NCBI GenBank assembly: GCA_013416795.1 | Contig: RQSC01000001.1 | Span: 317,834-381,833, forward strand | Source of the DNA: Prasinococcaceae sp. CCMP 1430 | Taxonomy: Eukaryota; Plantae; Prasinodermophyta | Direction of reading: 5' to 3' | Length of the DNA: 64,000 bases | In this document: positions 45,927-50,833 of the stretch, piece after piece | Position numbering within the stretch: the first letter of the stretch is position 1 | Layout: every line of letters begins with the position of its first letter | The notes under the pieces: model-generated | Databases searched by the model: none | What the model was told of the DNA's origin: nothing | What the model saw: the letters and a program-made list of their open reading frames with translations, nothing else | Translations under genes and position numbers: made by a program

Positions 45927-46634
45927 GGTGCGAACCGCCGACAGCCCCCCCCACCCTCGCCTCCCTCCCGCACGAGCGACAACACCCACACGCGCTCACC
46001 GCCCGCTCTCCTGGCACTCGCACCCTCCGCTCCCTTCACCCTCCTCTCCGCGCCTCCGCCCGCGGCTGGGCCACGGGCCGCGCGGGCGCCGCCGGCGGCG
46101 GGCAGCGGTGTGTGGCGCGTGCGCCCGTTCGCGCGCGTTCCCCCGGCGCGCGAGGACGCTTCGCGCGCCCGCTCATCGTCCCGCCCCGAGCGCATGCGGC
46201 GCGCCCCTCACAAACGCCTCCGTTGTGCGCCTGCGTTTCGATACGGCGATCCGTTCCCCGAGACCGGCAATGGATCGCCCATCAAATAACCTCTCGGCGT
46301 GGGAGTGGCTTTTTGGTGGCCACGCGGAGGGGCTTTGGTTGGGGAATCGAACGGCGTCGACGCCTCCCCTCCCTCCAGCGTTGGTTTACTGTACATACGG
46401 CTGACGCCGATCAAGCGCGTGGTCGAGGGAGACGGGGGTTGCGGGTCGGACCCAAGCGGGAGACGGAGAGGAGGGGTGCTACGGACCTCGCCGCATTAGG
46501 TGACAAGCGGGCGTCGTGCTCGCGCTTGCGCACGCTGACATGCGTCACCCAGGCTCAGAGCGACGCGCCTGCCAATCTGCGTTGCATCGTCTGAGGTCAC
46601 TTAAATGCGGCGCCTCAGGCCGCGAAGGCAGATC

Positions 46635-47991
46635 TCACAGCTTGTTGAGCCTGGAACAGATCACAACGCGTATGGACTGGTCGAAGGAGCCACACACGGC
46701 GAGCCCCTCCTTGTCCTGGCTCCAGTCCCAGCAGTTGACGGGTTGCGTGCTCAGCTGGCGGTACGTCAGGCAATGGACCTCACCACACACGCCGTAGTCG
46801 TGGCCCTCTGCGTCCTGCGCACGGCGTTGGTCGGGGTACGAGTACTGTGCACGCCCACACACGAGCACGTTGTCGGGCACGGACGGGCGCGCACGTGAGC
46901 GCACGTTCGTCGAAAAACGGCGGCATTTGCATCAGCAGCGTCAGCTCATTTCTGGCACGCCGAGCACGCGCGCGCCCGGCTCGACATGCGCGTACCTTGT
47001 ACAGCGAGACCGTTCCATCACCTCCTCCTACCATGAATAGATCGCGATTCTGGGGTAGGTGGCGTGTGCCCCAGAGTGTGGCCCCTGTGGGGAACTTCTC
47101 CGCTACACTCGCGTACCCCTTCTCCTTGTGACGTGTGCGCATGTCGAAGACGTGAAACTTGCCCTCGAGCGTGGCCACAGCGCATTTGTTCATGTGTATG
47201 TCCTTGCGGTCAAATTCAACGGCACACACGCCGTTCTTGACGTTCTTCTCCCACCTCACCTGCCCGTTGCGCAAATCGAAGAGCTTGACGTCGCCGTTGT
47301 CGTACCCAGCCAGCACGGACCTGTCGTCGTCGCAGTGCGAGTCACCGAAGGAGACACTCCAACAGTCGGGCACGGCCTCCAGACCCGCGGGCGGCTCAAA
47401 GGCCGCCACGGGCGCGTCCCGCTGGCGCGGATCCCACACGCACACGCGACCGTCCCGCGCCCCTGTCACGATTTCGGGCGCGCCATACCCTCTGCGCTGC
47501 CCCCCCATAGCGTCCATGGCGTTGATAATACCGCCGTGCGCCTGCACTTTCCACACTGGCGACGCCAGGCGCTCCAGGTCCCAACTGGCGAGCGTGCCAG
47601 CAAAGTCACCCGTAGCGATGTGGCGATCCGTCAGCGACGACGCTCCAAACGAGCCACAGCGGAGCGGGCTGGCGCTCTCCGCTTCGGTGAGCAGCTTCAC
47701 GCCCGACCCATCAAGCTCGTACACTTGAAGCGCGCCGCTTCCGCGCGCATGGCTGCCGAGTACAACGAAGCGCGCACTCAAGGGCACCCATTTTGTGTCG
47801 TACACCGTGAGTGCCAGCGACTTGTGCACGTGTTCGAGGATCTGTGGACGGTTGGTCGCGTCGAGGCCGCCATACGTCGTTCGCTCCTCCTGCGGCTTGC
47901 CGCCGTCGGCACCGGGAGCGCCGCCGGGTGCGGCCGCGGCCGCGCCGGCCATCGCCTCACGCGCGAGGGCCATCTGCGCCTCCATCGACAT
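46635..47991 (-). CDS. WDR92: WD repeat protein 92 (Monad/DNAAF10), 2 exons
   Basis: PQILEHVHKSL..TVYDTKWVPLSARFVVLGS..RGSG, CVWDPRQ, AGYDNGDVKLFDLR and NGVCAVEFDRKDI.MNK. Intron 46995-46845 (phase 0) gives LYK|YSYPDQR...DKEGLAVCGSFDQ. Confidence 0.93.
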
Positions 47992-48681
47992 GGCAGGCTT
48001 GCCTCTTCAGGCGCACGCCCGAGAGCCTCGAGCCTGGCGACGCGCGTGTCCGCGCAGGCCGGTCAAACGGTGCCACGTGCGCGCGCCCACGCCGCGCCCA
48101 CGAGCAGGCGGGTTGGCTTTCGCTTTCGGTGTGGCAAGCTGCGGCCGGCCTCGGGCCGGCGAGGGCAGCCGGACACGACCTCGCTGCTCAATTGGCTGGC
48201 TCCAAGCGCACGGATCGCCGCCGCCGCGCGCGCGCGGTGTGCCACCCGCCCGAGCGCGCTGGCTGCCCGCCAGGCGGGCGCGCGGGTCGCCGATCACCGC
48301 TGCCCTGCCTCGGGGAACGCATGCGGCGCCGGTCAAATGCGGCGGCCTCGGCCACTCGCAGCCAACATTTACTTAACCCTACATACGACCCCAAATGAAC
48401 CCAAACCTCATTTTCTTCATTGGACGCGTGCTGGCAGCCTGGGGCGCCGGGCGCGGGCGCGGCACACAGCGTGCGGCCACCGGGCTGCCCCCTCCCCCCC
48501 CCCTCCCCCCCCCCCTTCGGGCCCCAACGCTCGGCCTCGCTTCTCTGTGGGCTTCTTTCGTGTGCGCGGGGCGCGCGCGGTCGTGAGGAGTGCCGCTCGA
48601 CGGGTCACGCGCCTCAGTGTGCCCCCCCTCCCCACCCGCCCTCATCGTGCTCCGGCCAGTGGGCGCACCTCGAGGTCTTGG

Positions 48682-48951
48682 ATGGGCGGGCGTGAGGCGC
48701 GCGCAGGGGCGGCGGCCGTGGCGTCGGGAGCAGGCGCGGCGCCAGGCGGCGCGCCGACTGCTGAGCAGCTTCGCGTTGCCGCTGCTGAGCTCGGCGCAGT
48801 CAGGCCGGGCGCGCGCGTGTTTGCCGCCGCCGCGCCCGGTGGCGCGTTCTTCCCGGCGACGGCGGCGGATGCAAAAGCGCGCGTAGAGAAGGCCCTCAAG
48901 GCGGAGGAGGAGCGGGCGAAGGAGGAGCAGGCGAATCGTACGGTCTTATGA
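48682..48951 (+). CDS. 89-aa beta-prefoldin-like microprotein, ASDURF-like
   Basis: EQLRVAAAELGAVRPGARVFAAAAPGGAFF...KARVEKALKAEEERAKEEQ has an EL-x8-VF-x8-FF hairpin between two helices, the same spacing I recall for human ASDURF (EL-x8-VY-x8-FF). Confidence 0.6.
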   Translation: MGGREARAGAAAVASGAGAAPGGAPTAEQLRVAAAELGAVRPGARVFAAAAPGGAFFPATAADAKARVEKALKAEEERAKEEQANRTVL

Positions 48952-49022
48952 GAGCACAATGTACTAAGGGAATAATGATCACAGCCCGCAACCTTCTACG
49001 GCACCCATCTCCGCCTGCGCGC

Positions 49023-50508
49023 TCATGCCTGTAGGGGCGCACGGCGCACCGATTCGGAAAACGGCATGGCGCGCGCTTCAGGTCCGGGGCTAAGGCTGGC
49101 CTTGGCCGCGAGAGGGGCCGCCAGGTCGTCCTCCTCATCGTCGTCCAAAGCCCATGGTGGACGAATCAAGCGCGGGGGCAAGGTCATCGCGCGCACAGGC
49201 TCAGGCGCTGGTTCGGGCGCGGCCGGTGGTGCGCCACCCCGCGAAGTCTCTCCACTCGGCTTTCGCTGCTTGCGCTCTGGCTTCTCTCGCTCTCCGTCCC
49301 GATCATGCCCCTTTCGCTCGCGATCCGTCGGCAACACAAGGTCCTCTCCCTTGCCCTCCGCTCGGTCGGCGGCCGCCGCCGCCTCGGCTGCCGCCTCGAG
49401 CCGCTCCAGCCTGTCGATGACCGCCGCCAGCGATGGCCTCTGTGCCCTCTTGGGCTTGATGCATTTCTTGGCGACGCGCGCGATCTCGAGGAAGGCATCG
49501 CGAGGCCATCGCGCGCTCGCGTCCGCCAGCGCCAGCGCCGAGCGCTCGCGCTTGAACGCGTCCTCCACTACCTCCACCAGCTCTTTGTCATCCACCATCG
49601 CAGGTTTGGCCGTGAGCATCTGCAGCACCATCACGCCGAATGAGTACACGTCACACGCTGCGTCATATCGCCCGGTGCGAGCAAACTCCGGACAGATGAA
49701 GCCGTACGTGCCCGCCAGGTGGCGCGTGGCCGCGTGTGTTGCTCCGGAGGCTTGCGCGGGGCCGTGCCTCGCGAGTCCGAAGTCCGCGAGGCAAGCGTTG
49801 TTTGACTTGTCAAGAAGCACGTTCGAGCCCTTCACGTCGAGGTCTATTCAGTCGCGCCGAGACGCCGTCAGCGCCATGCACTCAAGCGCATCGAGCAGCG
49901 ATAGAGCAGCGAGCAGGAAGGGCAGGCGCAAACGCGCGCGCCTTGGCGCAGGGTACGCTGCGAGCTAAGGGAGGGGTGCGATCTGCCCCCCGAAGCTGGT
50001 GGCGACACGTACGTACGACGGGCGGGCTGAGCGAGTGCAGGTACATCAGCGCGCGGGCGAGCTGGCGCAACACCGAGAGGCGCACGCGCCAGTGCAGTGG
50101 TGGCAGCTTCGGGCCGTCCCGCCGCGGAAACAGCCGGTCGTCCACCGTGCCAGCGTCCATGAGCTCATACACTAACGCCCGCTCGCCATCGGGGCCGATA
50201 GCGCCCCCGATGAAGGTCACAACGTTCGGGTGCCGCAGTCTGGAGAGCACGGCCGCCTCCTGCTCATACTCGGCGGCGCTCTGGAGCGTGCTGATGCCAT
50301 AGCGTGGGGTGGCCTTGAGGCGCATGCGCTTGACCGCCACAGGCGTGCCCCTTTCCTTGTTGAAGAGCTTACCGCTGTACACAGGCCCGAAAGCTCCGTC
50401 GCCCAGGAGGTTGCGTTCGGAGAAGCCGTCGGTCGCCGCGACAATGTCGTCCCACTTCAGCTCCAGCGCCGACCCCCGCGGCACGTGAGGCGCGACCAGG
50501 GGCGCCAT
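49023..50508 (-). CDS. RLK/Pelle-type receptor-like cytoplasmic kinase, non-RD, 2 exons
   Basis: WDDIVAATDGFSERNLLGDGAFGPVY, VAVK, LRHPNVVTFIG, LVYELM and WRVRL..L...ARALMYLH. Intron 50012-49844 (phase 1) gives VVHLDVKGSNVLLD. Then DFGLAR, GTYGFICPE and DVYSFGV. Confidence 0.9.
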
Positions 50509-50833
50509 CGCCGCCCCCGCCTCAGCCGCCGCGGCCCTCCCCCACGCGGCCCGCTGCCACCCGCGTCCCGCGGCGACGGTGTGGCTCAGAGGCGCGGGCG
50601 CCGGCGTCTTCGGGGAACGAACCAATTCAAACCTTGCGTGCATGGAGACGCGCCCCATGCATTCTGATGAGCACGGATGCAATCATCATGTATCTGTGCG
50701 TGCGTGTTTTTTTTTTGCCGAGCATTTTTTATTTATTTTTGTGGCGTTTGGTGTTTGCGTGAGCGCGCGCGCGCGCGCGCGGGTGCCACACTGCACGCGA
50801 GGTGCCCCCCGCACATCCTCCCCTACAGGCGTC

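Follow-up and report, generated by a model that had tools for sequence, protein, structure and literature searches.

A small constrained gene divergent from WDR92 in a Prasinococcaceae alga, a candidate stand-alone ASDURF

Introduction

ASDURF is a well-known functional microprotein that annotation overlooked for years. To our knowledge, its distribution beyond animals and Arabidopsis is barely documented, and sequence searches miss it. The human protein (Pfam family PF21975, ASNSD1-SEP) is encoded by an upstream open reading frame (uORF) of the ASNSD1 mRNA. It belongs, as a beta-type subunit, to the prefoldin-like module that also contains URI, UXT, PDRG1, PFD2 and PFD6 (PMC10187264, PMC8567396). 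Arabidopsis has the same module, and there ASDURF is a separate gene, At1g49245, whose product was recovered by affinity purification and mass spectrometry with URI and UXT (bioRxiv 10.1101/2023.12.13.571423; PMC10893143). Because the Arabidopsis gene stands by itself, the uORF arrangement is not a defining feature outside animals (PMC10893143). WDR92 associates with the prefoldin-like module and R2TP, and is required for the stability and preassembly of axonemal dynein heavy chains in Chlamydomonas, planaria and Drosophila (PMC6727741, PMC6821370, PMC4831875, PMC6028525).

Here we describe a small gene next to WDR92 in Prasinococcaceae sp. CCMP 1430, a marine green alga of the Prasinodermophyta. 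It lies on a 64,000-nucleotide stretch of contig RQSC01000001.1 (assembly GCA_013416795.1, positions 317,834 to 381,833), which we call the window and whose coordinates are used throughout; the region is locally G+C-rich (61–82%). An earlier note, made from the sequence alone, had pointed to an 89-residue ORF on the plus strand that begins about 690 bp from the WDR92 start codon (47991, minus strand), and had proposed that it is a stand-alone ASDURF homologue sharing a bidirectional promoter with WDR92. The ORF has the length and position claimed, with its ATG at 48682, a TGA at 48949–48951 and a product reading MGGREARAG...EEQANRTVL; exactly 690 bp separate the two start codons (47992–48681). 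We are highly confident that it is a genuine, separately encoded gene. Its product is probably beta-prefoldin-like, and ASDURF is its most likely identity, an assignment that we favour with some reserve.

The algal protein resembles human ASDURF in size, in its predicted beta-prefoldin layout and in its nearest language-model clusters, and the prefoldin-like complex with which human ASDURF works also has a link to WDR92 (PMC10187264, PMC6727741). The spacing EL-x8-V[FY]-x8-FF would be a further likeness, going by the unverified human core in the earlier note. The two differ in that the human protein comes from a uORF, whereas the algal gene is separate: as the earlier note had it, no ASNSD1-like ORF follows downstream, and the next gene is instead a convergent protein kinase with its stop at 49023. 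They differ also in that there is no similarity at the level of hidden Markov models (HMMs), and in that the N-terminal helix of the algal protein is short and lies behind a Gly/Ala/Pro-rich tail. Arabidopsis At1g49245, too, is a stand-alone small Viridiplantae gene, and it encodes a beta-type prefoldin-like protein, as the algal gene is predicted to do.

Results

The small ORF is a coding gene

The length of the ORF is by itself no evidence of a gene, because an ATG-initiated ORF of at least 89 codons arises in 80% of shuffles of the 1031-bp spacer and the window contains 182 of them. The frame of the small ORF is stop-free for 630 codons (47059–48951, plus strand), mostly antisense to WDR92 exon 1 and then over the spacer, which illustrates how little ORF length says in this genome. 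One explanation is a chance ORF in G+C-rich spacer DNA, whose low diversity would come from a non-coding role as kinase 3' untranslated region (UTR), antisense transcript or regulatory element. Such a size is expected by chance, and the long open frame fits. Codon usage argues otherwise. A codon log-odds table was trained on five window ORFs of 893–1398 codons, in frame versus the other five frames, and WDR92 exon 1, the kinase and one further gene were held out as true coding windows. The small ORF scores +0.265 bits per codon, equal to the held-out coding windows (0.256 ± 0.119) and above all 381 controls, comprising 321 off-frame windows (all at or below 0.137) and 60 spacer windows (all at or below 0.016). 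Its own other five frames score from −0.46 to −0.01. Along the frame of the ORF the score is negative upstream, turns positive exactly from the ATG at 48682, and climbs toward the C-terminus. No ATG is present in any frame between 48398 and 48681. An in-frame start further upstream at 48338, which would give 204 codons, was dropped because the codon score over the extension is negative, its diversity is high, and indels of 2 bp and 10 bp break the frame in other strains.

Variation among strains gives a second line of evidence. A word-based protein search returned as its only match a 97% identical strain variant on a Tara Oceans contig, and the 90% cluster of the small protein holds five variants that stand for about 41 contigs. 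The locus recurs in Tara Oceans metagenomes, and twelve same-species contigs (L001 and L021–L031) were compared with the window, giving 13 sequences, eight of which span spacer, ORF and kinase. Among these eight, nucleotide diversity is 2.83% in the spacer, the most diverse part of the region, versus 0.78% in the small ORF and 0.73% in the coding sequence of the kinase next to it. The spacer has segregating sites in 57 of its 702 columns, the ORF in 6 of its 270; when the ORF is set against the flanking non-coding DNA as a whole, namely the spacer together with the 71-bp gap that follows the stop, Fisher p is 0.001. Indels affect 48 columns of the spacer and none of the ORF. The reading frame is intact in all 12 contigs checked. 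The 71-bp gap is necessarily kinase 3' UTR, and in the 13 sequences it is more variable than the ORF (5.6 versus 2.6 segregating sites per 100 bp), which speaks against the low diversity being that of a UTR. Within the ORF, four of seven single-nucleotide polymorphisms are synonymous third-position changes. Those in residues 1–26 are synonymous only (48687 and 48708), and the C-terminal helix region at 48860–48949 carries no substitution among the 13 sequences. Across all five protein variants just four amino-acid sites vary (A33D, A55V, P58T and R31C).

The window itself carries a minority allele at two hairpin sites, A55 and P58 (48845 and 48853). All 12 fetched ocean contigs have V55 and T58, both residues that favour beta strands; variants P0123 and P0125, from contigs outside the 12, keep P58.

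Three points weaken the case for a coding gene. Ten of the 12 contigs were fetched through exact identity to one protein variant, which excludes non-synonymous variation among them by design. Taken alone, the comparison of the window with L001 is ambiguous, with 5 differences in 270 bp of the ORF, 3 of them non-synonymous, and 20 in 690 bp of the spacer. The third concerns RNA: the two WDR92 exons and the kinase are all covered by assembled metatranscriptome contigs, which give neither strand nor expression level, and those over the small ORF reach only 48871–49046 and may belong to the 3' UTR of the convergent kinase. None covers 48520–48870. These contigs give no evidence specific to a plus-strand transcript, and the sole one on the ORF extends over the end of the kinase; both points favour a chance ORF. 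The constraint argument nevertheless stands despite the sampling bias, because the cluster listing shows few protein variants and because an exhaustive search met one disrupted version only, on a contig laden with indel errors (see below).

Apparent depth peaks at 48487–48515 and 48900–48931 were rejected as expression, being low-complexity contigs of other organisms. The first coincides with a C-rich tract in the spacer (ccccctcccccccccctcccccccccc), which draws 31-nt low-complexity metatranscriptome contigs at up to 2400x, a mapping artefact. The tract varies in length among strains, with indels of 10 bp and larger.

The predicted fold supplies the third independent line, a fold being obtained for the sense frame and none for the antisense frame (next section). 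On codon usage, population constraint and fold together, the gene is real, in agreement with the earlier reading of the ORF as coding, and we regard a chance ORF as very improbable.

The product is predicted to have a beta-prefoldin layout

From the single sequence, AlphaFold2 predicts a helix, a two-stranded hairpin and a second, longer helix (Table 1), with a mean predicted local distance difference test (pLDDT) of 69 and a predicted template modelling score (pTM) of 0.55. An antisense ORF of similar composition, modelled as a control, gave pLDDT 50, pTM 0.29, one helix and no fold. The motif EL-x8-VF-x8-FF is present exactly as the earlier note gave it (E36-L37, V46-F47, F56-F57), and the helix-hairpin-helix arrangement claimed with it is reproduced by the model. 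Each of the top five Foldseek matches in the PDB is a prefoldin beta subunit from an archaeon (1fxk_B: E 0.53, probability 0.84, TM 0.54), followed by human PFD chains. Among 48,161 representative chains searched with VIA-align, 2zdi_A and 1fxk_A rank first, at Z 6.5 and a root-mean-square deviation (rmsd) of 2.0–2.2 over 64 residues. The best structural match in the ESM Atlas is a 79-residue Streptophyta cluster annotated Prefoldin_2 plus ASNSD1-SEP, which superposes with TM 0.65 by query and 0.73 by target and an rmsd of 1.4 over 63 residues.

The model and all three structural comparisons agree with the beta-prefoldin layout proposed at the outset. The likeness to beta-prefoldins (PF01920; 1fxk_B, 2zdi_A and chains of 6nr8) lies in the predicted succession of helix, beta-hairpin and helix. 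Those proteins, in contrast, are 100–155 residues long with two long helices, whereas the folded core of the algal protein is about 65 residues; identities in the structural alignments are 12–19%, and PF01920 is not matched. On this evidence the 89-residue protein is, in our judgement, probably beta-prefoldin-like.

Family membership

The search for a family was made with language-model features as well as with sequences. In the Atlas feature search (7.7 million clusters), the top three matches of the whole protein are ASNSD1-SEP clusters (PF21975; 0.85, 0.83 and 0.82, with 192 shared features, a count typical of true family members by the tool's own calibration). With core residues 24–89, ASNSD1-SEP clusters are again on top (0.86, 0.86 and 0.82), followed by the plant cluster. 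Over both searches the top ASNSD1-SEP matches share 168–196 features. The protein, 89 residues with a single predicted beta-type prefoldin unit, also fits an ASDURF microprotein of about 70–100 residues; the ASNSD1-SEP clusters in the Atlas are 73–96 residues long.

A number of results count against the assignment. The structure scores are weak: the Foldseek E value is about 0.5, and a Z of 6.5 is not clearly above that of unrelated helical proteins (6.0–6.3). The N-terminal helix has just 12 residues and is shorter than a normal prefoldin tentacle. Atlas scores of 0.85–0.86 fall under the tool's 0.9 trust level and are leads, with a third of shuffled proteins attaining 0.8. In Pfam-A, hmmscan at E ≤ 10 matched neither PF21975 nor PF01920 with the whole protein, with residues 24–89 or with the common allele P0001. 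Searches of the PDB, by phmmer with the protein and by hmmsearch with a six-variant profile, gave noise and no ASDURF or prefoldin. Exhaustive phmmer against 1.84 billion representatives found only the cluster of the species itself, two giant proteins of low complexity and a noisy copy of this locus. Finally, the motif match to human ASDURF relies on the core given in the earlier note, and a search of papers for an ASDURF tryptic peptide found nothing, leaving the match unverified.

The noisy copy, P0128 (80 residues, L037:4640–4882), was rejected as an orthologue. It comes from this very locus of the alga, where indel errors have fused two frames into a frame-shifted chimera; the contig has 1.26x coverage, comes from a sample labelled 'chicken', and over 6.5 kb shows 94.7% identity and 128 gap openings.

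It is possible that the gene is a lineage-specific orphan, a real and constrained protein that reached helix-hairpin-helix by convergence and shares no descent with ASDURF or the prefoldins. Such an orphan would have no relative beyond the species in any sequence search and no Pfam match, as we find. The structural and language-model scores are in the range that the tools themselves call leads, the fold is simple, and 37% of the sequence is alanine. On the other hand, two different searches, one by sequence features and one by predicted structure, meet on one small family. The ten best family-bearing feature matches all share the family or clan, with 186–196 shared features, as is typical of true members. 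The length lies within that of the ASDURF clusters, and the neighbouring gene encodes a partner of the same complex. We consider an orphan origin unlikely, though by no means negligible.

Canonical beta subunits and PDRG1 are about 110–155 residues long and are normally matched by PF01920. A beta-prefoldin relative other than ASDURF, such as a shortened PFD1-, PFD4- or PDRG1-like paralogue, would account for fold matches that go to generic beta-prefoldins, and clusters of the 'Prefoldin subunit 1 family' also appear in the Atlas list (0.76–0.77). However, those relatives are longer than the algal protein and would ordinarily be caught by PF01920, which is unmatched here, and ASNSD1-SEP clusters outrank clusters with Prefoldin_2 alone in both Atlas searches. 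We judge such a paralogue quite improbable.

On balance, an ASDURF orthologue is the reading that we prefer. The earlier proposal of a stand-alone algal ASDURF homologue thus stands in part: the gene is coding, the predicted fold fits, and ASNSD1-SEP comes first in the Atlas, while HMM-level similarity to ASDURF or beta-prefoldins is absent in Pfam at E ≤ 10 and neither the PDB searches nor phmmer yielded a relative.

The neighbour is WDR92

The gene on the minus strand can be solidly assigned, on sequence similarity, as the WDR92/DNAAF10 orthologue. Its two exons were searched one by one. The match to human WDR92 (PDB 3i2n) has an E value of 9.3e-112 over residues 45–333. There are 1030 relatives at E ≤ 1e-60, many of them named DNAAF10/WDR92; named matches across eukaryotes are 57–65% identical, and identity to named green algae and plants is at most 65%. 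A metatranscriptome contig joins 46844 to 46996 and confirms the intron, which is very polymorphic (4.6 segregating sites per 100 bp, 22 indel positions). In exon 1, third codon positions hold 12 of the 17 polymorphisms. An Ala/Gly-rich N-terminal extension of about 44 residues (47860–47991, minus strand) is absent from human WDR92, and the alignment begins at residue 45.

The head-to-head pairing is not shared with four other green algae

At this locus WDR92 and the small gene are divergent. Synteny in other green algae, a check named in the earlier note, gave no support: in each of four further species compared, the pairing is missing at WDR92. An abundant marine picoalga has a Complex1_LYR gene upstream of WDR92, in tandem. 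In Pedinophyceae sp. YPF-701 the upstream position is taken by an Arf GTPase, in Chlamydomonas by a mitochondrial carrier, and in Cymbomonas by a distant phosphatase. Scanning metagenomes with exon 1 of WDR92 found only loci of 39–73% identity, and those at 60% identity have no relative of the small ORF upstream of WDR92. A weak tblastn match upstream of WDR92 in contigs L002 and L004 was rejected, as it is antisense to another gene. The closest other WDR92 relative, from a sister species (L020; Logan run SRR30000419), is 84% identical and has just 131 bp of upstream sequence.

Compact algal genomes commonly have divergent neighbours separated by less than 1 kb. WDR92 and the small gene may share a bidirectional promoter. 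A stronger proposal is that, in a flagellate alga, an ASDURF orthologue and WDR92 are non-accidental neighbours that use one 690-bp divergent promoter; the smallest prefoldin-like subunit and the dynein-specific PAQosome adaptor would then be produced jointly, for example in flagellar assembly. This we hold to be doubtful. Two blocks of the otherwise variable spacer are free of substitutions (48020–48049 and 48200–48259) and are candidate promoter or WDR92 5' UTR elements.

Features of the locus

Coordinates are collected in Table 1. The convergent kinase gene spans two ORF pieces, 49023–49835 and 49882–50682 (minus strand), each with a Pkinase match in the strain contigs, and there is probably an intron or a frame change near 49836–49881. 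A 9-bp insertion polymorphism lies in the kinase region at 49954.

Table 1. Features at the WDR92 and small-gene locus, in window coordinates
Feature	Position	Strand	Basis and remarks
WDR92/DNAAF10 exon 2	46635–46844	-	69 codons plus stop; in frame with exon 1 over the RNA-supported joint; WD40 match; RNA contig 46607–46845
WDR92 intron	46845–46995	-	151 nt, GT..AG; skipped by metatranscriptome contig (CT..AC on the plus strand)
WDR92/DNAAF10 exon 1	46996–47991	-	332 codons, ATG at 47991; similarity to human WDR92
Divergent spacer between the two start codons	47992–48681	.	690 bp; putative promoters and 5' UTRs; contains length-variable C tract 48487–48515
89-codon beta-prefoldin-like microprotein gene, probable ASDURF orthologue	48682–48951	+	Codon usage, constraint, AlphaFold2, Atlas
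Microprotein residues 1–26, Gly/Ala/Pro-rich N-terminus, predicted mostly disordered	48682–48759	+	pLDDT about 49 for residues 1–20
Microprotein residues 27–38, predicted short N-terminal helix	48760–48795	+	DSSP H27–38, pLDDT about 82
Microprotein residues 45–60, predicted beta-hairpin (strands 45–49 and 56–60) bearing VF and FF	48814–48861	+	DSSP E45–49, E56–60
Microprotein residues 61–88, predicted C-terminal helix	48862–48945	+	DSSP H61–88, pLDDT 81–83; codon score peaks here
Gap from the stop codon of the small gene to that of the convergent kinase	48952–49022	.	71 bp, A+T-richer
Convergent protein kinase gene, 3' part; neighbour outside the pair	49023–49835	-	PF00069/PF07714 on the same gene in contigs L001, L021–L031; RNA contigs 49002–49708

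Discussion

If the assignment is right, the small protein would be a miniature beta-type prefoldin, in which a disordered Gly/Ala/Pro-rich N-terminus precedes a short helix, a beta-hairpin and a long helix. The prefoldin-like module (URI, UXT, PDRG1, PFD2, PFD6 and ASDURF) docks on R2TP, the two together making the PAQosome, and ASDURF is the smallest of its beta subunits. The hairpin of the algal protein might, by analogy, form part of the double beta-barrel in the hub of the hexamer, its helices forming one short tentacle. WDR92, the product of the divergent neighbour, is an established partner of this module, and axonemal dyneins require it for their cytoplasmic stability and preassembly. 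What the analysis shows is a coding gene under constraint, with a predicted fold; its place in the family, its incorporation into the complex and any regulation in common with WDR92 are inferred.

A stand-alone ASDURF in Viridiplantae has already been published. What is new here is a candidate in a marine green alga that HMMs do not detect, and its adjacency to WDR92. The advance is a modest one, since a stand-alone ASDURF was known from plants and the pairing lacks conservation. Should the gene be the algal orthologue, the combination of codon usage, population constraint and fold prediction would be shown to recover such genes where HMMs fail, and the known range of the complete prefoldin-like module would come to include a marine green alga. 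A link between the module and dynein preassembly has been suggested by WDR92 interaction data (PMC6727741, PMC4831875) but is not known to have been dissected for ASDURF. A shared promoter, if true, would be a first instance of genomic linkage among subunits of the PAQosome and would hint at a joint action of ASDURF and WDR92 in preassembling dyneins. The position of the small gene beside WDR92 provides an inexpensive handle on whether the prefoldin-like module acts in the preassembly of axonemal dyneins.

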